NCBI GenBank assembly: GCA_002189035.1
Contig: NEEC01000060.1
Location: 1-58,404 of the forward strand
Length of the DNA: 58,404 bases
Origin: Utricularia gibba
Taxonomy: Eukaryota; Plantae; Magnoliophyta
Direction of reading: 5' to 3'
Made by a program: the position numbers and the translations under genes. Positions 1 to 58,404 of this stretch are shown here, one piece after another. The notes beneath the pieces were generated by a model. The model saw nothing but the letters and a program-made list of their open reading frames with translations, had not been told where the DNA came from and did not search any database. Each line of letters starts with the position of its first letter. Within the stretch, counting starts at the first letter, position 1.

Positions 1-536
1 GCACACTGTTGGGAAGCCCTTTTCGAGCTCCAAGTATTATAATTTGGAGTTACGTTTGTCCGATAACTGTGGACATATTAAAAACAAGCCACAACGAAAA
101 GTGTCTTAGGTGTCCTTTCTTGGTGGCTGCGTCTAAGAATGTGCTTCTCGTTCTCGACATTGATGCAAATGGGATACACGGCAAAAGAATCAAATAGCCA
201 CTAGAGACATGGTGTATGGGAATGGTGCATCAAGAATCAGAAGTATCATAGCAACTAATTGAATCAATCAACAGCCAAAACATATGGTGTCAAACTTCAT
301 CGGATATGCGATCAAGATGGAAAAAAGTCACATGTTACATCATGAATTTCGTGGCATCACTTATCCCAACACTGTTGTATACTCAGGATATGCGTAAATA
401 TTTATTTTTAACAAATCCGGTGCACGTGTGATTTTTTCGGCTGCATCCCGAATGGTGATGCGCAATGAAATGACTACGTCGCACATCCTGGTCCGCGAAA
501 CACTCTTGCATAACATGCAGATCCTTGCTCTTCATA
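1..536. repeat. Representative monomer A (536 bp)
   Basis: Runs from GCACACTGTTGGG at 1 to the next GCACACTGTTGGG at 537. Confidence 0.95.
332..448 (-). pseudogene. Degenerate 5S rRNA-like segment in the first A monomer (C-type alleles)
   Basis: Same sequence as the C-type 5S-like segment apart from one extra T in the T5 run. Confidence 0.7.
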
Positions 537-1059
537 GCACACTGTTGGGAAGCCCTTTTCGAGCTCCAAGTATTATAATTTGGAGTTACGTTTGTCCGAT
601 AACTGTGGACATATTAAAAAAGGGCCACAACGAAAGGTGTCTCACGTGGCATTCCGTGGTGACTGCATTTAATAATGTGCTTCATGTTCTCGAAATTGAT
701 GCGAACAACATACAAGGCAAAAGAATCAAATAGCCACTAGAGACATGGTATACGGGAATGGTGCATCAAGAATCAGAAGTATCATAGCAACTAAATGCAT
801 CAACATATGGTGTCAGAATTCATCTACTATGCGATCAAGTTGGAAAAAAGTCACATGCTACATCATGAATTTCGTGGCATCACTTATCCCAACACTGTTA
901 TACACTCTGGATATGCGTAAATATTTATTTTTAATGAATCCCGTGCACGTGTGATTTTTAGGATGCACCCCGAATGATGATGCGCAATGAAATGACTACG
1001 TCGCACATCCTGGTCCGCGAAGCACCTCTTGCATAACATGCAGATCCTTGCTCTTCATA
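537..1059. repeat. Representative monomer B (523 bp; 13 bp shorter than A)
   Basis: GCAACTAA-ATGCATCAA-CATATGG in B versus GCAACTAA-TTGAATCAATCAACAGCCAAAA-CATATGG in A/C; the next A starts at 1060. Confidence 0.95.
855..970 (-). pseudogene. Degenerate 5S rRNA-like segment, B-type copy (closest to 5S); one such segment per monomer
   Basis: The minus strand reads GGGTGC-ATCCTAAAAATCACACG-TGCACGGGAT-TCATTAAAAAT...TTACGC...AGTGTTGGGATAAGTGA...CCACGAAATTCATGATGTAGCAT. Plant 5S (recalled) reads GGGTGCGATCATACCAGCACTAA-TGCACCGGAT-CCCATCAGAACT...TTAAGC...AGTACTAGGATGGGTGA...CCTGGGAAGTCCTCGTGTTGCAC. About 69 of 119 columns are identical by hand, colinear from 5S nt 1 to nt 116. Confidence 0.72.
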
Positions 1060-4000
1060 GCACACTGTTGGGAAGCCCTTTTCGAGCTCCAAGTATTATA
1101 ATTTGGAGTTACGTTTGTCCGATAACTGTGGACATATTAAAAACAAGCCACAACGAAAAGTGTCTTAGGTGTCCTTTCTTGGTGGCTGCGTCTAAGAATG
1201 TGCTTCTCGTTCTCGACATTGATGCAAATGGGATACACGGCAAAAGAATCAAATAGCCACTAGAGACATGGTGTATGGGAATGGTGCATCAAGAATCAGA
1301 AGTATCATAGCAACTAATTGAATCAATCAACAGCCAAAACATATGGTGTCAAACTTCATCGGATATGCGATCAAGATGGAAAAAAGTCACATGTTACATC
1401 ATGAATTTCGTGGCATCACTTATCCCAACACTGTTATATACACTCTGGATATGCGTAAATATTTATTTTTAATGAATCCGTGCACGTGTGATTTTTAGGA
1501 TGCACCCGAATGATGATGCGCAATGAAATGACTACGTCGCACATCCTGGTCCGCGAAGCACCTCTTGCATAACATGCAGATCCTTGCTCTTCATAGCACA
1601 CTGTTGGGAAGCCCTATTCGAGCTCCAAGTATTATAATTTGGAGTTACGTTTGTCCGATAACTGTGGACATATTAAAAAAGGGCCACAACGAAAGGTGTC
1701 TCACGTGGCATTCCGTGGTGACTGCATTTAATAATGTGCTTCATGTTCTCGAAATTGATGCGAACAACATACAAGGCAAAAGAATCAAATAGCCACTAGA
1801 GACATGGTATACGGGAATGGTGCATCAAGAATCAGAAGTATCATAGCAACTAAATGCATCAACATATGGTGTCAGAATTCATCTACTATGCGATCAAGTT
1901 GGAAAAAAGTCACATGCTACATCATGAATTTCGTGGCATCACTTATCCCAACACTGTTATACACTCTGGATATGCGTAAATATTTATTTTTAATGAATCC
2001 CGTGCACGTGTGATTTTTAGGATGCACCCCGAATGATGATGCGCAATGAAATGACTACGTCGCACATCCTGGTCCGCGAAGCACCTCTTGCATAACATGC
2101 AGATCCTTGCTCTTCATAGCACACTGTTGGGAAGCCCTTTTCGAGCTCCAAGTATTATAATTTGGAGTTACGTTTGTCCGATAACTGTGGACATATTAAA
2201 AACAAGCCACAACGAAAAGTGTCTTAGGTGTCCTTTCTTGGTGGCTGCGTCTAAGAATGTGCTTCTCGTTCTCGACATTGATGCAAATGGGATACACGGC
2301 AAAAGAATCAAATAGCCACTAGAGACATGGTGTATGGGAATGGTGCATCAAGAATCAAAGTATCATAGCAACTAATTGAATCAATCAACAGCCAAAACAT
2401 ATGGTGTCAAACTTCATCGGATATGCGATCAAGATGGAAAAAAGTCACATGTTACATCATGAATTTCGTGGCATCACTTATCCCAACACTGTTATACACT
2501 CTGGATATGCGTAAATATTTATTTTTAATGAATCCGTGCACGTGTGATTTTTAGGATGCATCCCGAATGGTGATGCGCAATGAAATGACTACGTCGCACA
2601 TCCTGGTCCGCGAAGCACCTCTTGCATAACATGCAGATCCTTGCTCTTCATAGCACACTGTTGGGAAGCCCTTTCGAGCTCCAAGTATTATAATTTGGAG
2701 TTACGTTTGTCCGATAACTGTGGACATATTAAAAAAGGGCCACAACGAAAGGTGTCTCACGTGGCATTCCGTGGTGACTGCATTTAATAATGTGCTTCAT
2801 GTTCTCGAAATTGATGCGAACAACATACAAGGCAAAAGAATCAAATAGCCACTAGAGACATGGTATACGGGAATGGTGCATCAAGAATCAGAAGTATCAT
2901 AGCAACTAAATGCATCAACATATGGTGTCAGAATTCATCTACTATGCGATCAAGTTGGAAAAAAGTCACATGCTACATCATGAATTTCGTGGCATCACTT
3001 ATCCCAACACTGTTATACACTCTGGATATGCGTAAATATTTATTTTTAATGAATCCCGTGCACGTGTGATTTTTAGGATGCACCCCGAATGATGATGCGC
3101 AATGAAATGACTACGTCGCACATCCTGGTCCGCGAAGCACCTCTTGCATAACATGCAGATCCTTGCTCTTCATAGCACACTGTTGGGAAGCCCTTTTCGA
3201 GCTCCAAGTATTATAATTTGGAGTTACGTTTGTCCGATAACTGTGGACATATTAAAAACAAGCCACAACGAAAAGTGTCTTAGGTGTCCTTTCTTGGTGG
3301 CTGCGTCTAAGAATGTGCTTCTCGTTCTCGACATTGATGCAAATGGGATACACGGCAAAAGAATCAAATAGCCACTAGAGACATGGTGTATGGGAATGGT
3401 GCATCAAGAATCAGAAGTATCATAGCAACTAATTGAATCAATCAACAGCCAAAACATATGGTGTCAAACTTCATCGGATATGCGATCAAGATGGAAAAAA
3501 GTCACATGTTACATCATGAATTTCGTGGCATCACTTATCCCAACACTGTTGTATACTCAGGATATGCGTAAATATTATTTTTAACAAAATCCGGTGCACG
3601 TGTGATTTTTCGGCTGCATCCCGAATGGTGATGCGCAATGAAATGACTACGTCGCACATCCTGGTCCGCGAAGCACCTCTTGCATAACATGCAGATCCTT
3701 GCTCTTCATAGCACACTGTTGGGAAGCCCTTTCGAGCTCCAAGTATTATAATTTGGAGTTACGTTTGTCCGATAACTGTGGACATATTAAAAAAGGGCCA
3801 CAACGAAAGGTGTCTCACGTGGCATTCCGTGGTGACTGCATTTAATAATGTGCTTCATGTTCTCGAAATTGATGCGAACAACATACAAGGCAAAAGAATC
3901 AAATAGCCACTAGAGACATGGTATACGGGAATGGTGCATCAAGAATCAGAAGTATCATAGCAACTAAATGCATCAACATATGGTGTCAGAATTCATCTAC

Positions 4001-7000
4001 TATGCGATCATCAAGTTGGAAAAAAGTCACATGCTACATCATGAATTTCGTGGCATCACTTATCCCAACACTGTTATACACTCTGGATATGCGTAAATAT
4101 TTATTTTTAATGAATCCCGTGCACGTGTGATTTTTAGGATGCACCCCGAATGATGATGCGCAATGAAATGACTACGTCGCACATCCTGGTCCGCGAAGCA
4201 CCTCTTGCATAACATGCAGATCCTTGCTCTTCATAGCACACTGTTGGGAAGCCCTTTTCGAGCTCCAAGTATTATAATTTGGAGTTACGTTTGTCCGATA
4301 ACTGTGGACATATTAAAAACAAGCCACAACGAAAAGTGTCTTAGGTGTCCTTTCTTGGTGGCTGCGTCTAAGAATGTGCTTCTCGTTCTCGACATTGATG
4401 CAAATGGGATACACGGCAAAAGAATCAAATAGCCACTAGAGACATGGTGTATGGGAATGGTGCATCAAGAATCAGAAGTATCATAGCAACTAATTGAATC
4501 AATCAACAGCCAAAACATATGGTGTCAAACTTCATCGGATATGCGATCAAGATGGAAAAAAGTCACATGTTACATCATGAATTTCGTGGCATCACTTATC
4601 CCAACACTGTTATACACTCTGGATATGCGTAAATATTTATTTTTAAAATCCCGTGCACGTGTGATTTTTAGGATGCACCCGAATGATGATGCGCAATGAA
4701 ATGACTACGTCGCACATCCTGGTCGCGAAACACCTCTTGCATAACATGCAGATCCTTGCTCTTCATAGCACACTGTTGGGAAGCCCTTTTCGAGCTCCAA
4801 GTATTATAATTTGGAGTTACGTTTGTCCGATAACTGTGGACATATTAAAAAAGGGCCACAACGAAAGGTGTCTCACGTGGCATTCCGTGGTGACTGCATT
4901 TAATAATGTGCTTCATGTTCTCGAAATTGATGCGAACAACATACAAGGCAAAAGAATCAAATAGCCACTAGAGACATGGTATACGGGAATGGTGCATCAA
5001 GAATCAGAAGTATCATAGCAACTAAATGCATCAACATATGGTGTCAGAATTCATCTACTATGCGATCAAGTTGGAAAAAAGTCACATGCTACATCATGAA
5101 TTTCGTGGCATCACTTATCCCAACACTGTTATACACTCTGGATATGCGTAAATATTTATTTTTAATGAATCCCGTGCACGTGTGATTTTTAGGATGCACC
5201 CCGAATGATGATGCGCAATGAAATGACTACGTCGCACATCCTGGTCCGCGAAGCACCTCTTGCATAACATGCAGATCCTTGCTCTTCATAGCACACTGTT
5301 GGGAAGCCCTTTTCGAGCTCCAAGTATTATAATTTGGAGTTACGTTTGTCCGATAACTGTGGACATATTAAAAACAAGCCACAACGAAAAGTGTCTTAGG
5401 TGTCCTTTCTTGGTGGCTGCGTCTAAGAATGTGCTTCTCGTTCTCGACATTGATGCAAATGGGATACACGGCAAAAGAATCAAATAGCCACTAGAGACAT
5501 GGTGTATGGGAATGGTGCATCAAGAATCAGAAGTATCATAGCAACTAATTGAATCAATCAACAGCCAAAACATATGGTGTCAAACTTCATCGGATATGCG
5601 ATCAAGATGGAAAAAAGTCACATGTTACATCATGAATTTCGTGGCATCACTTATCCCAACACTGTTATACACTCTGGATATGCGTAAATATTTATTTTTA
5701 ATGAATCCGTGCACGTGTGATTTTTAGGATGCACCCGAATGATGATGCGCAATGAAATGACTACGTCGCACATCCTGGTCCGCGAAGCACCTCTTGCATA
5801 ACATGCAGATCCTTGCTCTTCATAGCACACTGTTGGGAAGCCCTTTTCGAGCTCCAAGTATTATAATTTGGAGTTACGTTTGTCCGATAACTGTGGACAT
5901 ATTAAAAAAGGGCCACAACGAAAGGTGTCTCACGTGGCATTCCGTGGTGACTGCATTTAATAATGTGCTTCATGTTCTCGAAATTGATGCGAACAACATA
6001 CAAGGCAAAAGAATCAAATAGCCACTAGAGACATGGTATACGGGAATGGTGCATCAAGAATCAGAAGTATCATAGCAACTAAATGCATCAACATATGGTG
6101 TCAGAATTCATCTACTATGCGATCAAGTTGGAAAAAAGTCACATGCTACATCATGAATTTCGTGGCATCACTTATCCCAACACTGTTATACACTCTGGAT
6201 ATGCGTAAATATTTATTTTTAATGAATCCCGTGCACGTGTGATTTTTAGGATGCACCCCGAATGATGATGCGCAATGAAATGACTACGTCGCACATCCTG
6301 GTCCGCGAAGCACCTCTTGCATAACATGCAGATCCTTGCTCTTCATAGCACACTGTTGGGAAGCCCTTTTCGAGCTCCAAGTATTATAATTTGGAGTTAC
6401 GTTTGTCCGATAACTGTGGACATATTAAAAACAAGCCACAACGAAAAGTGTCTTAGGTGTCCTTTCTTGGTGGCTGCGTCTAAGAATGTGCTTCTCGTTC
6501 TCGACATTGATGCAAATGGGATACACGGCAAAAGAATCAAATAGCCACTAGAGACATGGTGTATGGGAATGGTGCATCAAGAATCAGAAGTATCATAGCA
6601 ACTAATTGAATCAATCAACAGCCAAAACATATGGTGTCAAACTTCATCGGATATGCGATCAAGATGGAAAAAAGTCACATGTTACATCATGAATTTCGTG
6701 GCATCACTTATCCCAACACTGTTGTACACTCTGGATATGCGTAAATATTTATTTTTAAATCCGTGCACGTGTGATTTTTAGGCTGCACCCGAATGGTGAT
6801 GCGCAATGAAATGACTACGTCGCACATCCTGGTCGCGAAGCACCTCTTGCATAACATGCAGATCCTTGCTCTTCATAGCACACCTGTTGGGAAGCCCTAT
6901 TCGAGCTCCAAGTATTATAATTTGGAGTTACGTTTGTCCGATAACTGTGGACATATTAAAAAAGGGCCACAACGAAAGGTGTCTCACGTGGCATTCCGTG

Positions 7001-9843
7001 GTGACTGCATTTAATAATGTGCTTCATGTTCTCGAAATTGATGCGAACAACATACAAGGCAAAAGAATCAAATAGCCACTAGAGACATGGTATATGGGGA
7101 ATGGTGCATCAAGAATCAGAAGTATCATAGCAACTAAATGCATCAACATATGGTGTCAGAATTCATCTACTATGCGATCAAGTTGGAAAAAAGTCACATG
7201 CTACATCATGAATTTCGTGGCATCACTTATCCCAACACTGTTATACACTCTGGATATGCGTAAATATTTATTTTTAATGAATCCCGTGCACGTGTGATTT
7301 TTAGGATGCACCCCGAATGATGATGCGCAATGAAATGACTACGTCGCACATCCTGGTCCGCGAAGCACCTCTTGCATAACATGCAGATCCTTGCTCTTCA
7401 TAGCACACTTTGGGAAGCCCTTTTCGAGCTCCAAGTATTATAATTTGGAGTTACGTTTGTCCGATAACTGTGGACATATTAAAAACAAGCCACAACGAAA
7501 AGTGTCTTAGGTGTCCTTTCTTGGTGGCTGCGTCTAAGAATGTGCTTCTCGTTCTCGACATTGATGCAAATGGGATACACGGCAAAAGAATCAAATAGCC
7601 ACTAGAGACATGGTGTATGGGAATGGTGCATCAAGAATCAGAAGTATCATAGCAACTAATTGAATCAATCAACAGCCAAAACATATGGTGTCAAACTTCA
7701 TCGGATATGCGATCAAGATGGAAAAAAGTCACATGTTACATCATGAATTTCGTGGCATCACTTATCCCAACACTGTTGTACACTCTGGATATGCGTAAAT
7801 ATTTATTTTAAAAATCCGTGCACGTGTGATTTTTAGGATGCACCCCCGAATGGTGATGCGCAATGAAATGACTACGTCGCACATCCTGGTCGCGAAGCAC
7901 CTCTTGCATAACATGCAGATCCTTGCTCTTCATAGCACACTGTTGGGAAGCCCTTTTCGAGCTCCAAGTATTATAATTTGGAGTTACGTTTGTCCGATAA
8001 CTGTGGACATATTAAAAAAGGGCCACAACGAAAGGTGTCTCACGTGGCATTCCGTGGTGACTGCATTTAATAATGTGCTTCATGTTCTCGAAATTGATGC
8101 GAACAACATACAAGGCAAAAGAATCAAATAGCCACTAGAGACATGGTATACGGGAATGGTGCATCAAGAATCAGAAGTATCATAGCAACTAAATGCATCA
8201 ACATATGGTGTCAGAATTCATCTACTATGCGATCAAGTTGGAAAAAAGTCACATGCTACATCATGAATTTCGTGGCATCACTTATCCCAACACTGTTATA
8301 CACTCTGGATATGCGTAAATATTTATTTTTAATGAATCCGTGCACGTGTGATTTTTAGGATGCACCCCGAATGATGATGCGCAATGAAATGACTACGTCG
8401 CACATCCTGGTCCGCGAAGCACCTCTTGCATAACATGCAGATCCTTGCTCTTCATAGCACACTGTTGGGAAGCCCTTTTCGAGCTCCAAGTATTATAATT
8501 TGGAGTTACGTTTGTCCGATAACTGTGGACATATTAAAAACAAGCCACAACGAAAAGTGTCTTAGGTGTCCTTTCTTGGTGGCTGCGTCTAAGAATGTGC
8601 TTCTCGTTCTCGACATTGATGCAAATGGGATACACGGCAAAAGAATCAAATAGCCACTAGAGACATGGTGTATGGGAATGGTGCATCAAGAATCAGAAGT
8701 ATCATAGCAACTAATTGAATCAATCAACAGCCAAAACATATGGTGTCAAACTTCATCGGATATGCGATCAAGATGGAAAAAAGTCACATGTTACATCATG
8801 AATTTCGTGGCATCACTTATCCCAACACTGTTGTATACTCAGGATATGCGTAAATATTTATTTTTAACAAATCCGGTGCACGTGTGATTTTTCGGCTGCA
8901 TCCCGAATGGTGATGCGCAATGAAATGACTATGTCGCACATCCTGGTCCACGAAGCACCTCTTCGAAACATGTAGAGCCTTACTCTTCATAGCACACCAT
9001 TGGGAAGCTTTATTCGTGCTCCAAGTAATATCATATGGAGTTACGTTTTCCGATAACTGTGGACATATTAAAAACAACCTCAACGAAAAGTGTCTTCCGT
9101 GTCCTTCTTGGTGGCTGCGTCTAAGAATGTGCTTCTCGTTCTCGACATTGATGCAAATGGGATACACGGCAAAAGAATCAAATAGCCACTAGAGACATGG
9201 TGTATGGGAATGGTGCATCAAGAATCAGAAGTATCATAGCAACTAATTGAATCAATCAACAGCCAAAACATATGGTGTCAAACTTCATCGGATATGCGAT
9301 CAAGATGGAAAAAAGTCACATGTTACATCATGAATTTCGTGGCATCACTTATCCCAACACTGTTGTATACTCAGGATATGCGTAAATATTTATTTTTAAC
9401 AAATCCGGTGCACGTGTGATTTTTCGGCTGCATCCCGAATGGTGATGCGCAATGAAATGACTATGTCGCACATCCTGGTCCACGAAGCACCTCTTCGAAA
9501 ACATGTAGAGCCTTACTCTTCATAGCACACCATTGGGAAGCTTTATTCGTGCTCCAAGTAATATCATATGGAGTTACGTTTTTCCGATAACTGTGGACAT
9601 ATTAAAAACAACCTCAACGAAAAGTGTCTTCCGTGTCCTTCCTTGGTGGCTGCGTCTAAGAATGTGCTTCTCGTTCTCGACATTGATGCAAATGGGATAC
9701 ACGGCAAAAGAATCAAATAGCCACTAGAGACATGGTGTATGGGAATGGTGCATCAAGAATCAGAAGTATCATAGCAACTAATTGAATCAATCAACAGCCA
9801 AAACATATGGTGTCAAACTTCATCGGATATGCGATCAAGATGG

Positions 9844-9849
9844 AAAAAA
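9844..9849 (-). terminator. T6 run at the expected Pol III terminator position after the 5S-like segment (present in every monomer, e.g. 321-326, 844-849)
   Basis: Plus-strand GGAAAAAAGTCAC reads GTGAC-TTTTTT-CC on the minus strand. The T run starts at 5S-equivalent nt 122, just after the ~120-nt 5S length. Oligo-T is the established Pol III terminator. Confidence 0.55.
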
Positions 9850-9872
9850 GTCACATGTTACATCATGAATTT

Positions 9873-9890
9873 CGTGGCATCACTTATCCC
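9873..9890 (-). promoter_or_regulatory. Degenerate 5S box C remnant, probably non-functional
   Basis: Minus-strand GGGATAAGTGATGCCACG aligns with 5S AGGATGGGTGACCTCCTG at the matching position; GGATGGG has become GGATAAG. Confidence 0.5.
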
Positions 9891-9910
9891 AACACTGTTG
9901 TATACTCAGG

Positions 9911-9922
9911 ATATGCGTAAAT
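9911..9922 (-). promoter_or_regulatory. Degenerate 5S box A remnant
   Basis: Minus-strand ATTTACGCATAT aligns with 5S AGTTAAGCGTGC at the matching position. Confidence 0.4.
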
Positions 9923-12900
9923 ATTTATTTTTAACAAATCCGGTGCACGTGTGATTTTTCGGCTGCATCCCGAATGGTGATGCGCAATGAAATGACTATG
10001 TCGCACATCCTGGTCCACGAAGCACCTCTTCGAAAACATGTAGAGCCTTACTCTTCATAGCACACCATTGGGAAGCTTTATTCGTGCTCCAAGTAATATC
10101 ATATGGAGTTACGTTTTTCCGATAACTGTGGACATATTAAAAACAACCTCAACGAAAAGTGTCTTCGTGTCCTTCCTTGGTGGCTGCGTCTAAGAATGTG
10201 CTTCTCGTTCTCGACATTGATGCAAATGGGATACACGGCAAAAGAATCAAATAGCCACTAGAGACATGGTGTATGGGAATGGTGCATCAAGAATCAGAAG
10301 TATCATAGCAACTAATTGAATCAATCAACAGCCAAAACATATGGTGTCAAACTTCATCGGATATGCGATCAAGATGGAAAAAAGTCACATGTTACATCAT
10401 GAATTTCGTGGCATCACTTATCCCAACACTGTTGTATACTCAGGATATGCGTAAATATTTATTTTTAACAAATCCGGTGCACGTGTGATTTTTCGGCTGC
10501 ATCCCGAATGGTGATGCGCAATGAAATGACTATGTCGCACATCCTGGTCCACGAAGCACCTCTTCGAAAACATGTAGAGCCTTACTCTTCATAGCACACC
10601 ATTGGGAAGCTTTATTCGTGCTCCAAGTAATATCATATGGAGTTACGTTTTTCCGATAACTGTGGACATATTAAAAACAACCTCAACGAAAAGTGTCTTC
10701 CGTGTCCTTCCTTGGTGGCTGCGTCTAAGAATGTGCTTCTCGTTCTCGACATTGATGCAAATGGGATACACGGCAAAAGAATCAAATAGCCACTAGAGAC
10801 ATGGTGTATGGGAATGGTGCATCAAGAATCAGAAGTATCATAGCAACTAATTGAATCAATCAACAGCCAAAACATATGGTGTCAAACTTCATCGGATATG
10901 CGATCAAGATGGAAAAAAGTCACATGTTACATCATGAATTTCGTGGCATCACTTATCCCAACACTGTTGTATACTCAGGATATGCGTAAATATTTATTTT
11001 TAACAAATCCGGTGCACGTGTGATTTTTCGGCTGCATCCCGAATGGTGATGCGCAATGAAATGACTATGTCGCACATCCTGGTCCACGAAGCACCTCTTC
11101 GAAACATGTAGAGCCTTACTCTTCATAGCACACCATTGGGAAGCTTTATTCGTGCTCAAGTAATATCATATGGAGTTACGTTTTTCCGATAACTGTGGAC
11201 ATATTAAAAAAACCTCAACGAAAAGTGTCTTCCGTGTCCTTCCTTGGTGGCTGCGTCTAAGAATGTGCTTCTCGTTCTCGACATTGATGCAAATGGGATA
11301 CACGGCAAAAGAATCAAATAGCCACTAGAGACATGGTGTATGGGAATGGTGCATCAAGAATCAGAAGTATCATAGCAACTAATTGAATCAATCAACAGCC
11401 AAAACATATGGTGTCAAACTTCATCGGATATGCGATCAAGATGGAAAAAAGTCACATGTTACATCATGAATTTCGTGGCATCACTTATCCCAACACTGTT
11501 GTATACTCAGGATATGCGTAAATATTTATTTTTAACAAATCCGGTGCACGTGTGATTTTTCGGCTGCATCCCGAATGGTGATGCGCAATGAAATGACTAT
11601 GTCGCACATCCTGGTCCACGAAGCACCTCTTCGAAAACATGTAGAGCCTTACTCTTCATAGCACACCATTGGGAAGCTTTATTCGTGCTCCAAGTAATAT
11701 CATATGGAGTTACGTTTTTCCGATAACTGTGGACATATTAAAAACAACCTCAACGAAAAGTGTCTTCCGTGTCCTTCCTTGGTGGCTGCGTCTAAGAATG
11801 TGCTTCTCGTTCTCGACATTGATGCAAATGGGATACACGGCAAAAGAATCAAATAGCCACTAGAGACATGGTGTATGGGAATGGTGCATCAAGAATCAGA
11901 AGTATCATAGCAACTAATTGAATCAATCAACAGCCAAAACATATGGTGTCAAACTTCATCGGATATGCGATCAAGATGGAAAAAAGTCACATGTTACATC
12001 ATGAATTTCGTGGCATCACTTATCCCAACACTGTTGTATACTCAGGATATGCGTAAATATTTATTTTTAACAAATCCGGTGCACGTGTGATTTTTCGGCT
12101 GCATCCCGAATGGTGATGCGCAATGAAATGACTATGTCGCACATCCTGGTCCACGAAGCACCTCTTCGAAAACATGTAGAGCCTTACTCTTCATAGCACA
12201 CCATTGGGAAGCTTTATTCGTGCTCCAAGTAATATCATATGGAGTTACGTTTTTCCGATAACTGTGGACATATTAAAAACAACCTCAACGAAAAGTGTCT
12301 TCCGTGTCCTTCCTTGGTGGCTGCGTCTAAGAATGTGCTTCTCGTTCTCGACATTGATGCAAATGGGATACACGGCAAAAGAATCAAATAGCCACTAGAG
12401 ACATGGTGTATGGGAATGGTGCATCAAGAATCAGAAGTATCATAGCAACTAATTGAATCAATCAACAGCCAAAACATATGGTGTCAAACTTCATCGGATA
12501 TGCGATCAAGATGGAAAAAAGTCACATGTTACATCATGAATTTCGTGGCATCACTTATCCCAACACTGTTGTATACTCAGGATATGCGTAAATATTTATT
12601 TTTAACAAATCCGGTGCACGTGTGATTTTTCGGCTGCATCCCGAATGGTGATGCGCAATGAAATGACTATGTCGCACATCCTGGTCCACGAAGCACCTCT
12701 TCGAAAACATGTAGAGCCTTACTCTTCATAGCACACCATTGGGAAGCTTTATTCGTGCTCCAAGTAATATCATATGGAGTTACGTTTTTCCGATAACTGT
12801 GGACATATTAAAAACAACCTCAACGAAAAGTGTCTTCCGTGTCCTTCCTTGGTGGCTGCGTCTAAGAATGTGCTTCTCGTTCTCGACATTGATGCAAATG

Positions 12901-42900: not shown

Positions 42901-45900
42901 GAAAAGTGTCTTCCGTGTCCTTCCTTGGTGGCTGCGTCTAAGAATGTGCTTCTCGTTCTCGACATTGATGCAAATGGGATACACGGCAAAAGAATCAAAT
43001 AGCCACTAGAGACATGGTGTATGGGAATGGTGCATCAAGAATCAGAAGTATCATAGCAACTAATTGAATCAATCAACAGCCAAAACATATGGTGTCAAAC
43101 TTCATCGGATATGCGATCAAGATGGAAAAAAGTCACATGTTACATCATGAATTTCGTGGCATCACTTATCCCAACACTGTTGTATACTCAGGATATGCGT
43201 AAATATTTATTTTTAACAAATCCGGTGCACGTGTGATTTTTCGGCTGCATCCCGAATGGTGATGCGCAATGAAATGACTATGTCGCACATCCTGGTCCAC
43301 GAAGCACCTCTTCGAAAACATGTAGAGCCTTACTCTTCATAGCACACCATTGGGAAGCTTTATTCGTGCTCCAAGTAATATCATATGGAGTTACGTTTTT
43401 CCGATAACTGTGGACATATTAAAAACAACCTCAACGAAAAGTGTCTTCCGTGTCCTTCCTTGGTGGCTGCGTCTAAGAATGTGCTTCTCGTTCTCGACAT
43501 TGATGCAAATGGGATACACGGCAAAAGAATCAAATAGCCACTAGAGACATGGTGTATGGGAATGGTGCATCAAGAATCAGAAGTATCATAGCAACTAATT
43601 GAATCAATCAACAGCCAAAACATATGGTGTCAAACTTCATCGGATATGCGATCAAGATGGAAAAAAGTCACATGTTACATCATGAATTTCGTGGCATCAC
43701 TTATCCCAACACTGTTGTATACTCAGGATATGCGTAAATATTTATTTTTAACAAATCCGGTGCACGTGTGATTTTTCGGCTGCATCCCGAATGGTGATGC
43801 GCAATGAAATGACTATGTCGCACATCCTGGTCCACGAAGCACCTCTTCGAAAACATGTAGAGCCTTACTCTTCATAGCACACCATTGGGAAGCTTTATTC
43901 GTGCTCCAAGTAATATCATATGGAGTTACGTTTTTCCGATAACTGTGGACATATTAAAACAAACCTCAACGAAAAGTGTCTTCCGTGTCCTTCATTGGTG
44001 GCTGCGTCTAAGAATGTGCTTCTCGTTCTCGACATTGATGCAAATGGGATACACGGCAAAAGAATCAAATAGCCACTAGAGACATGGTGTATGGGAATGG
44101 TGCATCAAGAATCAGAAGTATCATAGCAACTAATTGAATCAATCAACAGCCAAAACATATGGTGTCAAACTTCATCGGATATGCGATCAAGATGGAAAAA
44201 AGTCACATGTTACATCATGAATTTCGTGGCATCACTTATCCCAACACTGTTGTATACTCAGGATATGCGTAAATATTTATTTTTAACAAATCCGGTGCAC
44301 GTGTGATTTTTCGGCTGCATCCCGAATGGTGATGCGCAATGAAATGACTATGTCGCACATCCTGGTCCACGAAGCACCTCTTCGAAAACATGTAGAGCCT
44401 TACTCTTCATAGCACACCATTGGGAAGCTTTATTCGTGCTCCAAGTAATATCATATGGAGTTACGTTTTTCCGATAACTGTGGACATATTAAAAACAACC
44501 TCAACGAAAAGTGTCTTCCGTGTCCTTCCTTGGTGGCTGCGTCTAAGAATGTGCTTCTCGTTCTCGACATTGATGCAAATGGGATACACGGCAAAAGAAT
44601 CAAATAGCCACTAGAGACATGGTGTATGGGAATGGTGCATCAAGAATCAGAAGTATCATAGCAACTAATTGAATCAATCAACAGCCAAAACATATGGTGT
44701 CAAACTTCATCGGATATGCGATCAAGATGGAAAAAAGTCACATGTTACATCATGAATTTCGTGGCATCACTTATCCCAACACTGTTGTATACTCAGGATA
44801 TGCGTAAATATTTATTTTTAACAAATCCGGTGCACGTGTGATTTTTCGGCTGCATCCCGAATGGTGATGCGCAATGAAATGACTATGTCGCACATCCTGG
44901 TCACTCTTCATAGCACACCATTGGGAAGCTTTATTCGTGCTCCAAGTAATATCATATGGAGTTACGTTTTTCCGATAACTGTGGACATATTAAAAACAAC
45001 CTCAACGAAAAGTAAGAATGTGGTTCTCGACATTGATGCAAATGGGATACATCAAGAAGAGACATGGTGTATGGGAATGGTGCATCAAGAATCAGAAGTA
45101 TCATAGCAACTAATTGAATCAATCAACAGCCAAAACATATGGTGTCAAACTTCATCGGATATGCGATCAAGATGGAAAAAAGTCACATGTTACATCATGA
45201 ATTTCGTGGCATCACTTATCCCAACACTGTTGTATACTCAGGATATGCGTAAATATTTATTTTTAACAAATCCGGTGCACGTGTGATTTTTCGGCTGCAT
45301 CCCGAATGGTGATGCGCAATGAAATGACTATGTCGCACATCCTGGTCCACGAAGCACCTCTTCGAAAACATGTAGAGCCTTACTCTTCATAGCACACCAT
45401 TGGGAAGCTTTATTCGTGCTCCAAGTAATATCATATGGAGTTACGTTTTTCCGATAACTGTGGACATATTAAAAACAACCTCAACGAAAAGTGTCTTCCG
45501 TGTCCTTCCTTGGTGGCTGCGTCTAAGAATGTGCTTCTCGTTCTCGACATTGATGCAAATGGGATACACGGCAAAAGAATCAAATAGCCACTAGAGACAT
45601 GGTGTATGGGAATGGTGCATCAAGAATCAGAAGTATCATAGCAACTAATTGAATCAATCAACAGCCAAAACATATGGTGTCAAACTTCATCGGATATGCG
45701 ATCAAGATGGAAAAAAGTCACATGTTACATCATGAATTTCGTGGCATCACTTATCCCAACACTGTTGTATACTCAGGATATGCGTAAATATTTATTTTTA
45801 ACAAATCCGGTGCACGTGTGATTTTTCGGCTGCATCCCGAATGGTGATGCGCAATGAAATGACTATGTCGCACATCCTGGTCCACGAAGCACCTCTTCGA

Positions 45901-51900: not shown

Positions 51901-54900
51901 AGTGTCTTCCGTGTCCTTCCTTGGTGGCTGCGTCTAAGAATGTGCTTCTCGTTCTCGACATTGATGCAAATGGATACACGGCAAAAGAATCAAATAGCCA
52001 CTAGAGACATGGTGTATGGGAATGGTGCATCAAGAATCAGAAGTATCATAGCAACTAATTGAATCAATCAACAGCCAAAACATATGGTGTCAAACTTCAT
52101 CGGATATGCGATCAAGATGGAAAAAAGTCACATGTTACATCATGAATTTCGTGGCATCACTTATCCCAACACTGTTGTATACTCAGGATATGCGTAAATA
52201 TTTATTTTTAACAAATCCGGTGCACGTGTGATTTTTCGGCTGCATCCCGAATGGTGATGCGCAATGAAATGACTATGTCGCACATCCTGGTCCACGAAGC
52301 ACCTCTTCGAAACATGTAGAGCCTTACTCTTCATAGCACACCATTGGGAAGCTTTATTCGTGCTCCAAGTAATATCATATGGAGTTACGTTTTTCCGATA
52401 ACTGTGGACATATTAAAAACAACCTCAACGAAAAGTGTCTTCCGTGTCCTTCCTTGGTGGCTGCGTTCTAAGAATGTGCTTCTCGTTCTCGACATTGATG
52501 CAAATGGGATACACGGCAAAAGAATCAAATAGCTCACTAGAGACATGGTGTATGGGAATGGTGCATCAAGAATCAGAAGTATCATAGCAACTAATTGAAT
52601 CAATCAACAGCCAAAACATATGGTGTCAAACTTCATCGGATATGCGATCAAGATGGAAAAAAGTCACATGTTACATCATGAATTTCGTGGCATCACTTAT
52701 CCCAACACTGTTGTATACTCAGGATATGCGTAAATATTTATTTTTAACAAATCCGGTGCACGTGTGATTTTTCGGCTGCATCCCGAATGGTGATGCGCAA
52801 TGAAATGACTATGTCGCACATCCTGGTCCACGAAGCACCTCTTCGAAAACATGTAGAGCCTTACTCTTCATAGCACACCATTGGGAAGCTTTATTCGTGC
52901 TCCAAGTAATATCATATGGAGTTACGTTTTTCCGATAACTGTGGACATATTAAAAACAACCTCAACGAAAAGTGTCTTCCGTGTCCTTCCTTGGTGGCTG
53001 CGTCTAAGAATGTGCTTCTCGTTCTCGACATTGATGCAAATGGGATACACGGCAAAAGAATCAAATAGCCACTAGAGACATGGTGTATGGGAATGGTGCA
53101 TCAAGAATCAGAAGTATCATAGCAACTAATTGAATCAATCAACAGCCAAAACATATGGTGTCAAACTTCATCGGATATGCGATCAAGATGGAAAAAAGTC
53201 ACATGTTACATCATGAATTTCGTGGCATCACTTATCCCAACACTGTTGTATACTCAGGATATGCGTAAATATTTATTTTTAACAAATCCGGTGCACGTGT
53301 GATTTTTCGGCTGCATCCCGAATGGTGATGCGCAATGAAATGACTATGTCGCACATCCTGGTCCACGAAGCACCTCTTCGAAAACATGTAGAGCCTTACT
53401 CTTCATAGCACACCATTGGGAAGCTTTATTCGTGCTCCAAGTAATATCATATGGAGTTACGTTTTTCCGATAACTGTGGACATATTAAAAACAACCTCAA
53501 CGAAAAGTGTCTTCCGTGTCCTTCCTTGGTGGCTGCGTCTAAGAATGTGCTTCTCGTTCTCGACATTGATGCAAATGATACACGGCAAAAGAATCAAATA
53601 GCCACTAGAGACATGGTGTATGGGAATGGTGCATCAAGAATCAGAAGTATCATAGCAACTAATTGAATCAATCAACAGCCAAAACATATGGTGTCAAACT
53701 TCATCGGATATGCGATCAAGATGGAAAAAAGTCACATGTTACATCATGAATTTCGTGGCATCACTTATCCCAACACTGTTGTATACTCAGGATATGCGTA
53801 AATATTTATTTTTAACAAATCCGGTGCACGTGTGATTTTTCGGCTGCATCCCGAATGGTGATGCGCAATGAAATGACTATGTCGCACATCCTGGTCCACG
53901 AAGCACCTCTTCGAAAACATGTAGAGCCTTACTCTTCATAGCACACCATTGGGAAGCTTTATTCGTGCTCCAAGTAATATCATATGGAGTTACGTTTTTC
54001 CGATAACTGTGGACATATTAAAAACAACCTCAACGAAAAGTGTCTTCCGTGTCCTTCCTTGGTGGCTGCGTCTAAGAATGTGCTTCTCGTTCTCGACATT
54101 GATGCAAATGGGATACACGGCAAAAGAATCAAATAGCCACTAGAGACATGGTGTATGGGAATGGTGCATCAAGAATCAGAAGTATCATAGCAACTAATTG
54201 AATCAATCAACAGCCAAAACATATGGTGTCAAACTTCATCGGATATGCGATCAAGATGGAAAAAAGTCACATGTTACATCATGAATTTCGTGGCATCACT
54301 TATCCCAACACTGTTGTATACTCAGGATATGCGTAAATATTTATTTTTAACAAATCCGGTGCACGTGTGATTTTTCGGGTGATGCTGCATCCCGAATGGT
54401 GATGCGCAAAGTGAAATGACTATGTCGCACATCCTGGTCCACGAAGCACCTCTTCGAAACATGTAGAGCCTTACTCTTCATAGCACACCATTGAAGCTTT
54501 ATTCGCCATCAAGTCACAACTAATTGAATCAATCAACAGCCAAAACATATGGTGTCAAACTTCATCGGATATGCGATCAAGATGGAAAAAAGTCACATGT
54601 TACATCATGAATTTCGTGGCATCACTTATCCCAACACTGTTGTATACTCAGGATATGCGTAAATATTTATTTTTAACAAATCCGGTGCACGTGTGATTTT
54701 TCGGCTGCATCCCGAATGGTGATGCGCAATGAAATGACTATGTCGCACATCCTGGTCCACGAAGCACCTCTTCGAAAACATGTAGAGCCTTACTCTTCAT
54801 AGCACACCATTGGGAAGCTTTATTCGTGCTCCAAGTAATATCATATGGAGTTACGTTTTCCGATAACTGTGGACATATTAAAAACAACCTCAACGAAAAG

Positions 54901-57238
54901 TGTCTTCCGTGTCCTTCCTTGGTGGCTGCGTTTAAGAATGTGCTTCTCGTTCTCGACATTGATGCAAATGGGATACACGGCAAAAGAATCAAATAGCCAC
55001 TAGAGACATGGTGTATGGGAATGGTGCATCAAGAATCAGAAGTATCATAGCAACTAATTGAATCAATCAACAGCCAAAACATATGGTGTCAAACTTCATC
55101 GGATATGCGATCAAGATGGAAAAAAGTCACATGTTACATCATGAATTTCGTGGCATCACTTATCCCAACACTGTTGTATACTCAGGATATGCGTAAATAT
55201 TTATTTTTAACAAATCCGGTGCACGTGTGATTTTTCGGCTGCATCCCGAATGGTGATGCGCAATGAAATGACTATGTCGCACATCCTGGTCCACGAAGCA
55301 CCTCTTCGAAAACATGTAGAGCCTTACTCTTCATAGCACACCATTGGGAAGCTTTATTCGTGCTCCAAGTAATATCATATGGAGTTACGTTTTTCCGATA
55401 ACTGTGGACATATTAAAAACAACCTCAACGAAAAGTGTCTTCCGTGTCCTTCCTTGGTGGCTGCGTCTAAGAATGTGCTTCTCGTTCTCGACATTGATGC
55501 AAATGGGATACACGGCAAAAGAATCAAATAGCCACTAGAGACATGGTGTATGGGAATGGTGCATCAAGAATCAGAAGTATCATAGCAACTAATTGAATCA
55601 ATCAACAGCCAAAACATATGGTGTCAAACTTCATCGGATATGCGATCAAGATGGAAAAAAGTCACATGTTACATCATGAATTTCGTGGCATCACTTATCC
55701 CAACACTGTTGTATACTCAGGATATGCGTAAATATTTATTTTTAACAAATCCGGTGCACGTGTGATTTTTCGGCTGCATCCCGAATGGTGATGCGCAATG
55801 AAATGACTATGTCGCACATCCTGGTCCACGAAGCACCTCTTCGAAAACATGTAGAGCCTTACTCTTCATAGCACACCATTGGGAAGCTTTATTCGTGCTC
55901 CAAGTAATATCATATGGAGTTACGTTTTTCCGATAACTGTGGACATATTAAAAAACAACCTCAACGAAAAGTGTCTTCCGTGTCCTTCCTTGGTGGCTGC
56001 GTCTAAGAATGTGCTTCTCGTTCTCGACATTGATGCAAATGGGATACACGGCAAAAGAATCAAATAGCCACTAGAGACATGGTGTATGGAATGGTGCATC
56101 AAGAATCAGAAGTATCATAGCAACTAATTGAATCAATCAACAGCCAAAACATATGGTGTCAAACTTCATCGGATATGCGATCAAGATGGAAAAAAGTCAC
56201 ATGTTACATCATGAATTTCGTGGCATCACTTATCCCAACACTGTTGTATACTCAGGATATGCGTAAATATTTATTTTTAACAAATCCGGTGCACGTGTGA
56301 TTTTTCGGCTGCATCCCGAATGGTGATGCGCAATGAAATGACTATGTCGCACATCCTGGTCCACGAAGCACCTCTTCGAAAACATGTAGAGCCTTACTCT
56401 TCATAGCACACCATTGGGAAGCTTTATTCGTGCTCCAAGTAATATCATATGGAGTTACGTTTTTCCGATAACTGTGGACATATTAAAAACAACCTCAACG
56501 AAAAGTGTCTTCCGTGTCCTTCCTTGGTGGCTGCGTCTAAGAATGTGCTTCTCGTTCTCGACATTGATGCAAAATTTCGTGGCATCACTTATCCCAACAC
56601 TGGATACACGGCAAAAGAATCAAATAGCCACTAGAGACATGGTGTAAGGAATGGTGCATCAAGAATCAGAAGTATCATAGCAACTAATTGAATCAATCAA
56701 CAGCCAAAACATATGGTGTCAAACTTCATCGGATATGCGATCAAGATGGAAAAAAGTCACATGTTACATCATGAATTTCGTGGCATCACTTATCCCAACA
56801 CTGTTGTATACTCAGGATATGCGTAAATATTTATTTTTAACAAATCCGGTGCACGTGTGATTTTTCGGCTGCATCCCGAATGGTGATGCGCAATGAAATG
56901 ACTATGTCGCACATCCTGGTCCACGAAGCACCTCTTCGAAAACATGTATGTAGAGCCTTACTCTTCATAGCACACCATTGGGAAGCTTTATTCGTGCTCC
57001 AAGTAATATCATATGGAGTTACGTTTTCCGATAACTGTGGACATATTAAAAACAACCAACGAAAAGTGTCTTAGGTGTCCTTCCTTGGTGGCTGCGTTAC
57101 GTAAGAATGTGCTTCTCGTTCTCGACATTGATGCAAAATGGTGCATCAAGATACACGGCAAAAGAATCAAATAGCCACTAGAGACATGGTGTATGGAATG
57201 GTGCATCAAGAATCAGAAGTATCATAGCAACTAATTGA

Positions 57239-57339
57239 ATCAATCAACAGCCAAAACATATGGTGTCAAACTTCATCGGATATGCGATCAATCAACAGCC
57301 AAAACATATGGTGTCAAACTTCATCGGATATGCGATCAA
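57239..57339. repeat. 48-bp tandem duplication inside one C monomer
   Basis: ATCAATCAACAGCC...GGATATGCG occurs at 57239 and again at 57287, bounded by ATCAA. Confidence 0.93.
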
Positions 57340-58404
57340 GATGGAAAAAAGTCACATGTTACATCATGAATTTCGTGGCATCACTTATCCCAACACTGTT
57401 GTATACTCAGGATATGCGTAAATATTTATTTTTAACAAATCCGGTGCACGTGTGATTTTTCGGCTGCATCCCGAATGGTGATGCGCAATGAAATGACTAT
57501 GTCGCACATCCTGGTCCACGAAGCACCTCTTCGAAAACATGTAGAGCCTTACTCTTCATAGCACACCATTGGGAAGCTTTATTCGTGCTCCAAGTAATAT
57601 CATATGGAGTTACGTTTTTCCGATAACTGTGGACATATTAAAAACAACCTCAACGAAATGTGTCTTCCGTGTCCTTCCTTGGTGGCTGCGTTTAATAATG
57701 TGCTTCTCGTTCTCGACATTGATGCAAAAAGATACACGGCAAAAGAATCAAATAGCCACTAGAGACATGGTGTAAGGAATGGTGCATCAAGAATCAGAAG
57801 TATCATAGCAACTAATTGAATCAATCAACAGCCAAAACATATGGTGTCAAACTTCATCGGATATGCGATCAAGATGGAAAAAAGTCACATGTTACATCAT
57901 GAATTTCGTGGCATCACTTATCCCAACACTGTTGTATACTCAGGATATGCGTAAATATTTATTTTTAACAAATCCGGTGCACGTGTGATTTTTCGGCTGC
58001 ATCCCGAATGGTGATGCGCAATGAAATGACTATGTCGCACATCCTGGTCCACGAAGCACCTCTTCGAAAATATGTAGAGCCTTACTCTTCATAGCACACC
58101 ATTGGGAAGCTTTATTCGTGCTCCAAGTAATATCATATGGAGTTACGTTTTTCCGATAACTGTGGACATATTAAAAACAACCTCAACGAAAAGTGTCTTC
58201 CGTGTCCTTCCTTGGTGGCTGCGTTTAATAATGTGCTTCTCGTTCTCGACATTGATGCAAAAAGATACACGGCAAAAAGAATCAAATAGCCACTAGAGAC
58301 ATGGTGTATGGGAATGGTGCATCAAGAATCAGAAGTATCATAGCAACTAATTGAATCAATCAACAGCCAAAACATATGGTGTCAAACTTCATCGGATATG
58401 CGAT

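Follow-up and report, generated by a model that had tools for sequence, protein, structure and literature searches.

A land-plant satellite array from Utricularia gibba with a probable, decayed 5S rRNA gene relic in every unit

Origin from 5S rDNA is already known for plant satellites and is rarely documented. PLsatB, a satellite of the B chromosome of Plantago lagopus (Lamiales), is described in PMC6410184, after Kumke et al. (2016), as a massively amplified 325-bp unit with 5S rDNA-derived sequence. For hyloid frogs, the account in PMC11675491 describes each unit of the PcP190 satellite as a variable region joined to about 120 bp that stem from the 5S coding sequence, and treats the satellite as old and common to several species. 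The centromeric satellite 5SHindIII of the fish Hoplias malabaricus is likewise credited to 5S rDNA in citations of Martins et al. (2006). The putative centromeric regions of Utricularia gibba, in turn, have been published as being without satellite repeats. We analyzed a window of U. gibba DNA, meaning the whole stretch of 58,404 nucleotides, in which an earlier note had proposed that each monomer of a tandem repeat is a decayed 5S rDNA unit. For the array in hand, a 5S-derived origin is the most likely one.

BLAST of two unit variants (A and B) against the window determined that positions 1-58404 are a single uninterrupted head-to-tail tandem repeat on one strand (plus), tiled completely by approximately 110 units of 522-536 bp and overrunning both window ends. 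The units fall into variants A, B, and C. Positions 1-8456 (plus strand) form a higher-order part of 8 A/B dimers, in which A measures 530-536 bp and B 522-525 bp; A and B are approximately 89% identical, and B copies are 99-100% identical among themselves. An A-like junction unit (8457-8991, plus strand, 98% identity to A) separates this part from the C-variant array (8992-58404, plus strand), which holds approximately 93 units of about 535 bp with 95% identity to A and 86% to B. No substitution relative to the C consensus was found in 75 of the 81 full-length C copies, and their length variation consists of single-base indels, mainly within short homopolymer runs; such near-identical copies suggest that C was homogenized very recently. 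Units damaged by internal deletions were recognized by BLAST tiling and inspection of irregular units at 27153-28614 (plus strand), with similar lesions at 36089-36928, 44412-45391, 53941-54801, and 56406-57560, and no foreign DNA was found in the irregular units of window 1-58404. Exact-word scans of genome contigs and viral contigs for the satellite gave no match. Related species carry variants of the satellite that are approximately 85-95% alike, at high read depth. A unit of 535 bp does not match the size of a nucleosome. Overall, the window is part of a large land-plant satellite array that is non-coding.

Each unit, 110 of 110, is composed of one 120-nt segment on the minus strand and a remainder of 403-415 bp, and no second 5S copy was found within that remainder. 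The segment starts with GGGTGC in A and B and with GGATGC in C. Its nucleotides 24-33 read TGCACGGGAT in B and TGCACCGGAT in C, and nucleotide 116 closes on ...GATGTAGCAT or ...GATGTAACAT, followed by GTGAC and then by TTTTTT. The start, the internal word, the end, and the T run had all been claimed in the earlier note, and all are in the sequence. Example copies, each on the minus strand, lie at 1387-1507 for A, 851-970 for B, and 9851-9970 for C, the last with TGCACCGGAT kept exactly. Read directly from the letters, a TTTTTT run sits 1 nt past the B relic (844-849, minus strand) and 1 nt past the C relic (9844-9849, minus strand), which is the position of a Pol III terminator. A run of at least 5 T starting 0-4 nt past a random end has a chance of approximately 2%. 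The layout is that of a 5S gene, about 120 nt (alignment positions 1-120) with a T-run terminator directly behind it. The GC content of the segment is 36-38%, compared to 56% for plant 5S and 42% for the remainder of the unit, in agreement with the values of about 38% and 56% noted before, and the CpG o/e of 0.9 indicates no depletion. A relic richer in AT than the supposed spacer, together with this CpG ratio, sits uneasily with a single shared history of decay.

Profile searches gave little. Rfam cmscan of the whole window at the gathering threshold matched no family, and neither did cmscan at E<=10 of 530-2130 (1.6 kb), 9525-10593 (1.07 kb), and 835-985 (151 nt), RF00001 included. The earlier note had staked its proposal on an RF00001 hit at 855-970 or 9855-9970, and at both places there was no match even at E<=10. 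The curated score of RF00001 is 38 bits, and real plant 5S genes in the fetched loci reach 65-96 bits. A plant 5S HMM run with nhmmer --max returned no match for the real units and weak matches in 5-7% of shuffles, and stringent local Smith-Waterman alignment to the plant 5S consensus was at shuffle background. With a plant-only 5S covariance model (R1, filters off), the best full-length match was exactly the candidate segment in A and B units. The R1 scores were weak, at 11.9 bits for B (model positions 1-120, E 0.06), 8.9 bits for A (model positions 1-120), and 2.4 bits for C.

Significant similarity to the 5S coding region was obtained only under end-to-end, transition-aware alignment, with a search-wide p of approximately 1e-4 to 5e-3. 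Aligned end to end with the plant 5S consensus, the segments have 63-69 matches and 4-10 gap columns (69 matches in 123 alignment columns for the B example), or approximately 56% identity, which bears out the claim of similarity over the whole coding length with few gaps. In semi-global searches with a symmetric K2P matrix, search-wide p was approximately 1e-3 for B, 6e-4 for C (score 22.1 for the example copy), and 0.03 for A; a decay matrix gave 2e-4 to 6e-3, and the plus strand never scored. The transition-aware matrices were picked after the alignment had been seen, and with no transition bonus the search-wide p rose to 0.007 for B, 0.05 for C, and 0.2 for A. When the query combined 5S with TTTTT, the scores of B and C were reached by 0 of 3000 target shuffles and 0 of 3000 decoys that kept the T tail, and that of A by 5-7 of 3000. 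Under unbiased scoring, transitions made up 0.48-0.57 of mismatches compared to 0.33-0.34 +/- 0.08 in shuffles, and the largest mismatch class was GC>AT transitions (16-17 of 42-49), as expected from the many G>A and C>T changes reported earlier. When a satellite variant from one related species was used as an outgroup, some of its changes brought it nearer to 5S and others took it further off, so that it was uninformative.

The match is specific to plant 5S. The plant 5S consensus scored 13-22 and single plant genes up to 30, whereas the all-life Rfam consensus on the same strand scored -3 to -4.5. Since the all-life consensus fell below its own decoys and the plant consensus stood far above its decoys, we judged the RF00001 test to be too blunt for this sequence. 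The plant specificity also supports the land-plant host that had been proposed from the letters. In practical terms, a lineage-specific relic with approximately 56% identity escapes both the all-life Rfam model of 5S and local profile HMMs, yet can still be detected by end-to-end alignment with a transition-aware substitution model and proper nulls.

These results allow more than one explanation. The resemblance could be due to chance, with an AT-rich satellite of unrelated origin aligning with 5S at approximately 56% and found by seeking 5S-like words. The 5S hypothesis was post hoc, Rfam, nhmmer, and local alignment were all empty, unbiased scoring was marginal for A and C, C was at background with the plant covariance model, and another region of the unit matches the 5S locus of an unrelated plant similarly (64% over 111 nt, E 0.047). 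However, three roughly independent signals agree, namely how well the segment aligns, how many of its mismatches are transitions, and where its terminator lies, with a joint search-wide p of approximately 1e-4 to 2e-3, the match is specific both to one strand and to plant 5S, and the best full-length match of the plant covariance model is at the same spot. We consider chance resemblance unlikely. Real 5S ancestry of the segment is probable, and the central claim that each monomer carries a decayed, full-length, plant-type 5S relic with its terminator was supported by the search-wide p, the transition excess, the plant specificity, and the top full-length match of the plant model.

Units were also compared by BLASTN (word size 7) with 119 fetched 5S-bearing loci, which belong to plants other than the host. 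The best match was the one just mentioned, to locus L100 and its relatives; it covers upstream spacer, runs 24 nt into the 5S gene, and sits on the plus strand, in a part of the unit other than the relic. It was examined on account of the period of L100-type arrays, approximately 505 bp. L100 is from an unrelated plant and not from the host, and the match was taken as chance.

A second explanation accepts the relic as real 5S and holds that unrelated sequence took up a lone 5S copy or fragment together with its terminator, and that the composite was then amplified. Possible routes include a dispersed 5S pseudogene, a Cassandra-type TRIM/LTR element carrying 5S, and mosaic amplification like that of PLsatB. 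The difference in GC between relic and remainder speaks for capture, as does a remainder without a tie to any 5S spacer, the compared loci being those of other plants. On the 5S-sense strand of the unit, however, there was no tRNA-iMet primer-binding site within 3 mismatches and no purine run of at least 10 that could serve as a polypurine tract, and no LTR-like structure or long internal direct repeat was found in the unit. With these hallmarks absent and the organization strictly tandem, identity as a Cassandra/TRIM retrotransposon was rejected. Two further points oppose capture in general: the relic spans the full length (1-120) and is followed immediately by the terminator, and plant 5S repeats in the fetched loci vary from approximately 290 to 1000 bp, a range that includes this unit. 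We regard capture, too, as improbable.

The relic is dead as a 5S gene. Consensus 5S base pairs are kept at 16-17 of 34 positions, compared to 14.4 +/- 2.7 in shuffles and 31 of 34 in the plant consensus, and the three-arm secondary structure that a 5S RNA requires was not found (MFE z-score +0.72). Promoter positions followed those established for Xenopus and Arabidopsis 5S genes. Identity was 8-10 of 15 in box A, 2-3 of 6 in the intermediate element, and 9 of 18 in box C. The box A- and box C-like words pointed out in the earlier note are indeed in the sequence, but these blocks are approximately 50% kept, which does not exceed conservation across the whole segment, and an intact internal Pol III promoter was lacking. 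RNA runs of the host species contain next to none of the words of the repeat. The full length of the segment and the T6 run at the terminator position would suit a 5S-like Pol III unit that still has a function or a regulatory role, whether as an array of variant 5S genes or as a decoy for TFIIIA or Pol III, but with pairing at chance level, folding no better than shuffles, half-kept promoter blocks, no RF00001 match, and the RNA result, this is extremely improbable. With no functional gene in the relic, the present behavior of the array is that of ordinary satellite DNA.

The unit is organized like a 5S rDNA repeat, with a 120-nt relic, a TTTTTT run where the terminator would be, and a further 403-415 bp. 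Since each unit carries a full-length decayed 5S copy with its terminator, the most likely beginning of the satellite is an array of 5S genes. That the whole unit, spacer included, descended from a 5S rDNA repeat is the reading toward which we lean slightly. Under this descent, all or one block of a 5S rDNA array would first have lost its function; point mutations, most of them transitions and largely GC to AT, would then have eroded it to approximately 56% identity. It may then have persisted as a tandem family and split into variants A, B, and C, common to related species. Finally, C could have expanded very recently and been homogenized by unequal exchange or a similar tandem amplification, which would have left the older A/B dimers at one flank of the expansion. 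At approximately 0.57 substitutions per site from 5S, the age would be roughly 10^7 years or more. We think it quite unlikely that the window holds an old 5S rDNA paralogue array whose unit remained intact across several related species and was re-amplified very recently in a plant with a very small genome. If it did, the array would have been kept by drive or selection, for example as pericentromeric or heterochromatin-organizing DNA, and would not be junk awaiting deletion. The presence in U. gibba of satellite DNA extending over at least 58 kb bears on the published satellite-free putative centromeres of this species.

Functional plant 5S arrays (L100 and L053) resemble the Utricularia array in layout: a gene of 120 nt is closed by a T-run terminator and followed by a few hundred bp of spacer, in units of approximately 505 bp compared to approximately 535 bp here. 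Their genes differ in scoring 65-96 bits with RF00001 at 56% GC, whereas the relic has no score, has lost structure and promoter, and is at 36-38% GC. Like the 5S-derived satellites, the Utricularia sequence is a long head-to-tail array of a non-functional unit (approximately 110 units and no RF00001 match in the window). Cassandra TRIMs, with 5S-like domains in their LTRs, are also non-rDNA repeats with a 5S-derived segment; the Utricularia unit differs in being strictly tandem and without primer-binding site, polypurine tract, or LTR. 5SHindIII is similarly derived from 5S rDNA, but it is an animal satellite, is centromeric, and keeps a truncated 5S gene only. PcP190 shares a tandem unit with a 5S-derived region of about 120 bp and is old and multi-species; it differs in being from animals, in its 190-bp unit, and in a highly conserved 5S-like region, compared to approximately 56% identity in the Utricularia relic. 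PLsatB is likewise a Lamiales plant satellite whose unit measures a few hundred bp and is partly 5S-derived. It carries 5S fragments and is specific to the B chromosome, whereas each 535-bp unit of the Utricularia array carries a single full-length gene with its terminator, in a far more decayed state. Because PLsatB provides a plant precedent, the array is not the first of its kind, and the rarity that had been claimed for such an origin was overstated. The Utricularia array would be a second plant satellite to have arisen from 5S rDNA, again in the Lamiales, with the whole gene-plus-terminator layout still traceable despite heavy decay.

A single 120-nt segment on the minus strand was present in each of the 110 satellite units (for example, at 851-970 in a B unit, 1387-1507 in an A unit, and 9851-9970 in a C unit, these being the variants of the approximately 535-bp unit), and there was no second 5S copy in the remaining 403-415 bp of the unit. 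The earlier note had read this segment as a decayed plant 5S gene, and every detail that it gave was borne out by the sequence. The segment begins with GGGTGC or GGATGC, has TGCAC(G/C)GGAT at nucleotides 24-33, and ends in GATGTA(G/A)CAT at nucleotide 116, followed by GTGAC and then TTTTTT. Its low GC content was also as described, 36-38% compared to 56% in the plant 5S consensus.

The earlier note had named Rfam model RF00001 as the check on this reading and had taken the absence of a match at 855-970 or 9855-9970 as refutation. RF00001 failed to match at its gathering score, and searches relaxed to E ≤ 10 on 1.6 kb, on 1.07 kb, and on the 151-nt candidate alone were equally negative. Other Rfam families likewise gave no match in these searches; by that measure, the 5S reading was refuted. 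Genuine plant 5S genes were drawn from metagenome contigs by means of a conserved 19-mer, and those sampled for Rfam scoring reached 65-96 bits. A plant 5S consensus was derived from the fetched genes, and 38 of them were aligned to build a plant-only covariance model. With filters off, the best full-length matches (model positions 1-120) of this model in the first 11.2 kb were exactly the candidate, at weak scores of 11.9 bits for B (E = 0.06), 8.9 bits for A, and 2.4 bits for C (E = 6.8). No match was found in real units by nhmmer at maximum sensitivity, and stringent local alignment of units with plant 5S was at the shuffle background.

Global alignment of the pre-chosen segment with the plant consensus yielded 63-69 matches, above 2000 of 2000 shuffles (z = 3.9-5.6). 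Because this test ignores the search over offset and strand, the later nulls were made search-wide, taking the best score over both strands of the whole circularised unit. The search-wide p values for B, C, and A were 0.005, 0.33, and 0.07, respectively, with +1/-1 scoring and 0.007, 0.05, and 0.2 with a log-odds matrix without transition bias (JC55). The transition-aware matrices, which were picked after the alignments had been viewed, gave 1e-3, 6e-4, and 0.03 (generic symmetric K2P) and 2e-4, 7e-4, and 6e-3 (GC>AT decay). The transition excess can, however, be tested separately: transitions were 48-57% of the mismatches in the unbiased +1/-1 alignment compared to 33-34 ± 8% in the best shuffle alignments, and the observed share was matched by 2 of 400 shuffles for A, 20 of 400 for B, and 0 of 400 for C. 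When the consensus was combined with TTTTT as the query and the decoys retained the T tail, the counts for both nulls were 0/3000 for B, 0/3000 for C, and 5-7/3000 for A; the chance of a T run of at least 5 beginning no more than 4 nt from a random end is about 2%. Target shuffling and query shuffling agreed, and the plus strand was never above background in the search-wide tests.

Units scored 13-22 against the plant consensus and up to 30 against individual plant 5S genes, and on the strand of the candidate the all-life Rfam consensus gave scores of only -3 to -4.5, under its own decoys. The match is thus specific to plant 5S, which accounts for the blindness of Rfam to the relic and supports the land-plant origin suggested in the earlier note. 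The relic keeps 16-17 of the 34 base pairs in the Rfam consensus structure (chance, 14.4 ± 2.7; plant consensus, 31), and its folding energy is not better than that of shuffles (z = +0.72). Identity in the promoter blocks, at positions that we take from established knowledge to be those of the 5S internal control regions, was 8-10/15, 2-3/6, and 9/18, the level of the whole segment. These data indicate that the relic is a pseudogene that no longer functions rather than a variant gene. The 22 transitions and 24 transversions over 117 aligned sites correspond to a K2P distance of about 0.57 substitutions per site, a lower bound owing to alignment optimisation. By rough inference, and assuming a neutral rate typical of plants, the relic would be tens of millions of years old; past hypermutability of the array would make it younger.

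Judged from sequence, the segment probably descends from a 5S gene; the transition-aware alignments support this part of the decayed 5S rDNA unit reading, and the negative or weak profile searches count against it. Those searches favor chance resemblance instead, as does the fact that, once the transition bonus is removed, only B is clearly significant; we consider chance unlikely. A yardstick for how readily weak matches appear was provided by positions 154-259 of unit A on the plus strand (window approximately 1213-1318). Five fetched metagenome loci (L100, L079, L062, L042, and L014; tandem 5S repeats of about 505 bp) matched there with their upstream spacer and the opening 24 nt of their 5S gene, at 64% over 111 nt (E = 0.047). 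This match lies in a different part of the unit and on the other strand and involves a non-host plant; it was judged to be chance. A 5S copy could also have been captured via a Cassandra-type element or a PLsatB-like mosaic, but neither a primer-binding site nor a polypurine tract was found in the unit, and LTR-like repeats were absent as well, which argues against the Cassandra-type route. That the unit in its entirety goes back to a 5S rDNA repeat, with the remainder as old non-transcribed spacer, is plausible, slightly better than an even prospect in our estimation, and unproven. Joint decay of gene and spacer by methyl-cytosine deamination fits poorly because the relic is more AT-rich than the remainder (42% GC) and CpG is not depleted.

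Other fetched loci (L017, L021, L052, and L010) were plant arrays in which the 5S unit recurs about every 291 bp and many mutated or truncated copies stand alongside intact genes. Some loci, L003 and L029 among them, had just the first 40-80 nt of 5S joined to unrelated sequence; such fusions would be expected of Cassandra-type or other 5S-carrying elements.

BLAST of two adjacent units against all 58,404 bases tiled the window fully, on one strand, with approximately 110 head-to-tail units. Eight A/B dimers occupied 1-8456, an A-like unit 8457-8991, and an array of the C variant (unit of about 535 bp) 8992 to the window end at 58404. Unit length was 530-536 bp for A and 522-525 bp for B; A was about 89% identical to B, B copies were 99-100% identical to each other, and C was 95% identical to A and 86% to B. 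The A/B dimers (1-8991 side), older and more diverged, flank the homogeneous C array (8992-58404). The satellite had 41% GC and a CpG o/e of 0.9, and the array was overlooked by TRF because the longest period that this program covers is 500. Compared to their own consensus, 75 of 81 full-length C copies had no substitution. Lengths in the C array (530-537 bp) differed by single-base indels, found in 24 of 28 variable alignment columns and predominantly within short homopolymers (T5, A4, GGG), that look like long-read noise. The near-uniform C array could reflect very recent amplification, or long-read indel noise plus consensus polishing of a collapsed repeat. A few units had internal deletions or short duplications, and no foreign DNA was found in the irregular units. 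Within one unit, 48 bp were perfectly duplicated in tandem (2.1 copies; 57239-57339), and a lengthened unit had a second occurrence, at 56573-56602, of the 30 nt from unit positions 345-374.

The repeat was present in "plant metagenome" sequencing runs and several coded organisms. Contigs of related organisms aligned to the window at approximately 85-95% identity, and word depth was in the hundreds in one run, indicating that the satellite family is real, abundant, and common to several species. In RNA runs from the host species, words of the repeat were all but absent. In one related species, record 9 was a B-like contig, whereas the contigs of records 11 and 13 aligned to the A-like unit, with identities of about 92-97% in each case; the variants may, therefore, have diverged before the species did.

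A literature search found no published description of this repeat in Utricularia. In a preprint (10.1101/2020.12.05.413054), the 2017 genome paper is cited for putative centromeric regions of U. gibba without satellite repeats. Set against that statement, the satellite array in the window extends over at least 58 kb. Established examples of satellites that arose from 5S rDNA are 5SHindIII in fish, PcP190 in frogs (PMC11675491), and, among plants, a satellite of the B chromosome of Plantago lagopus (PMC6410184). A centromeric repeat of switchgrass has reportedly been related to 5S genes as well, and the paper on it is cited among those on rDNA-derived satellites. Compared to the known 5S-derived satellites, the Utricularia relic is full-length with a terminator, and its degree of decay sets it apart.
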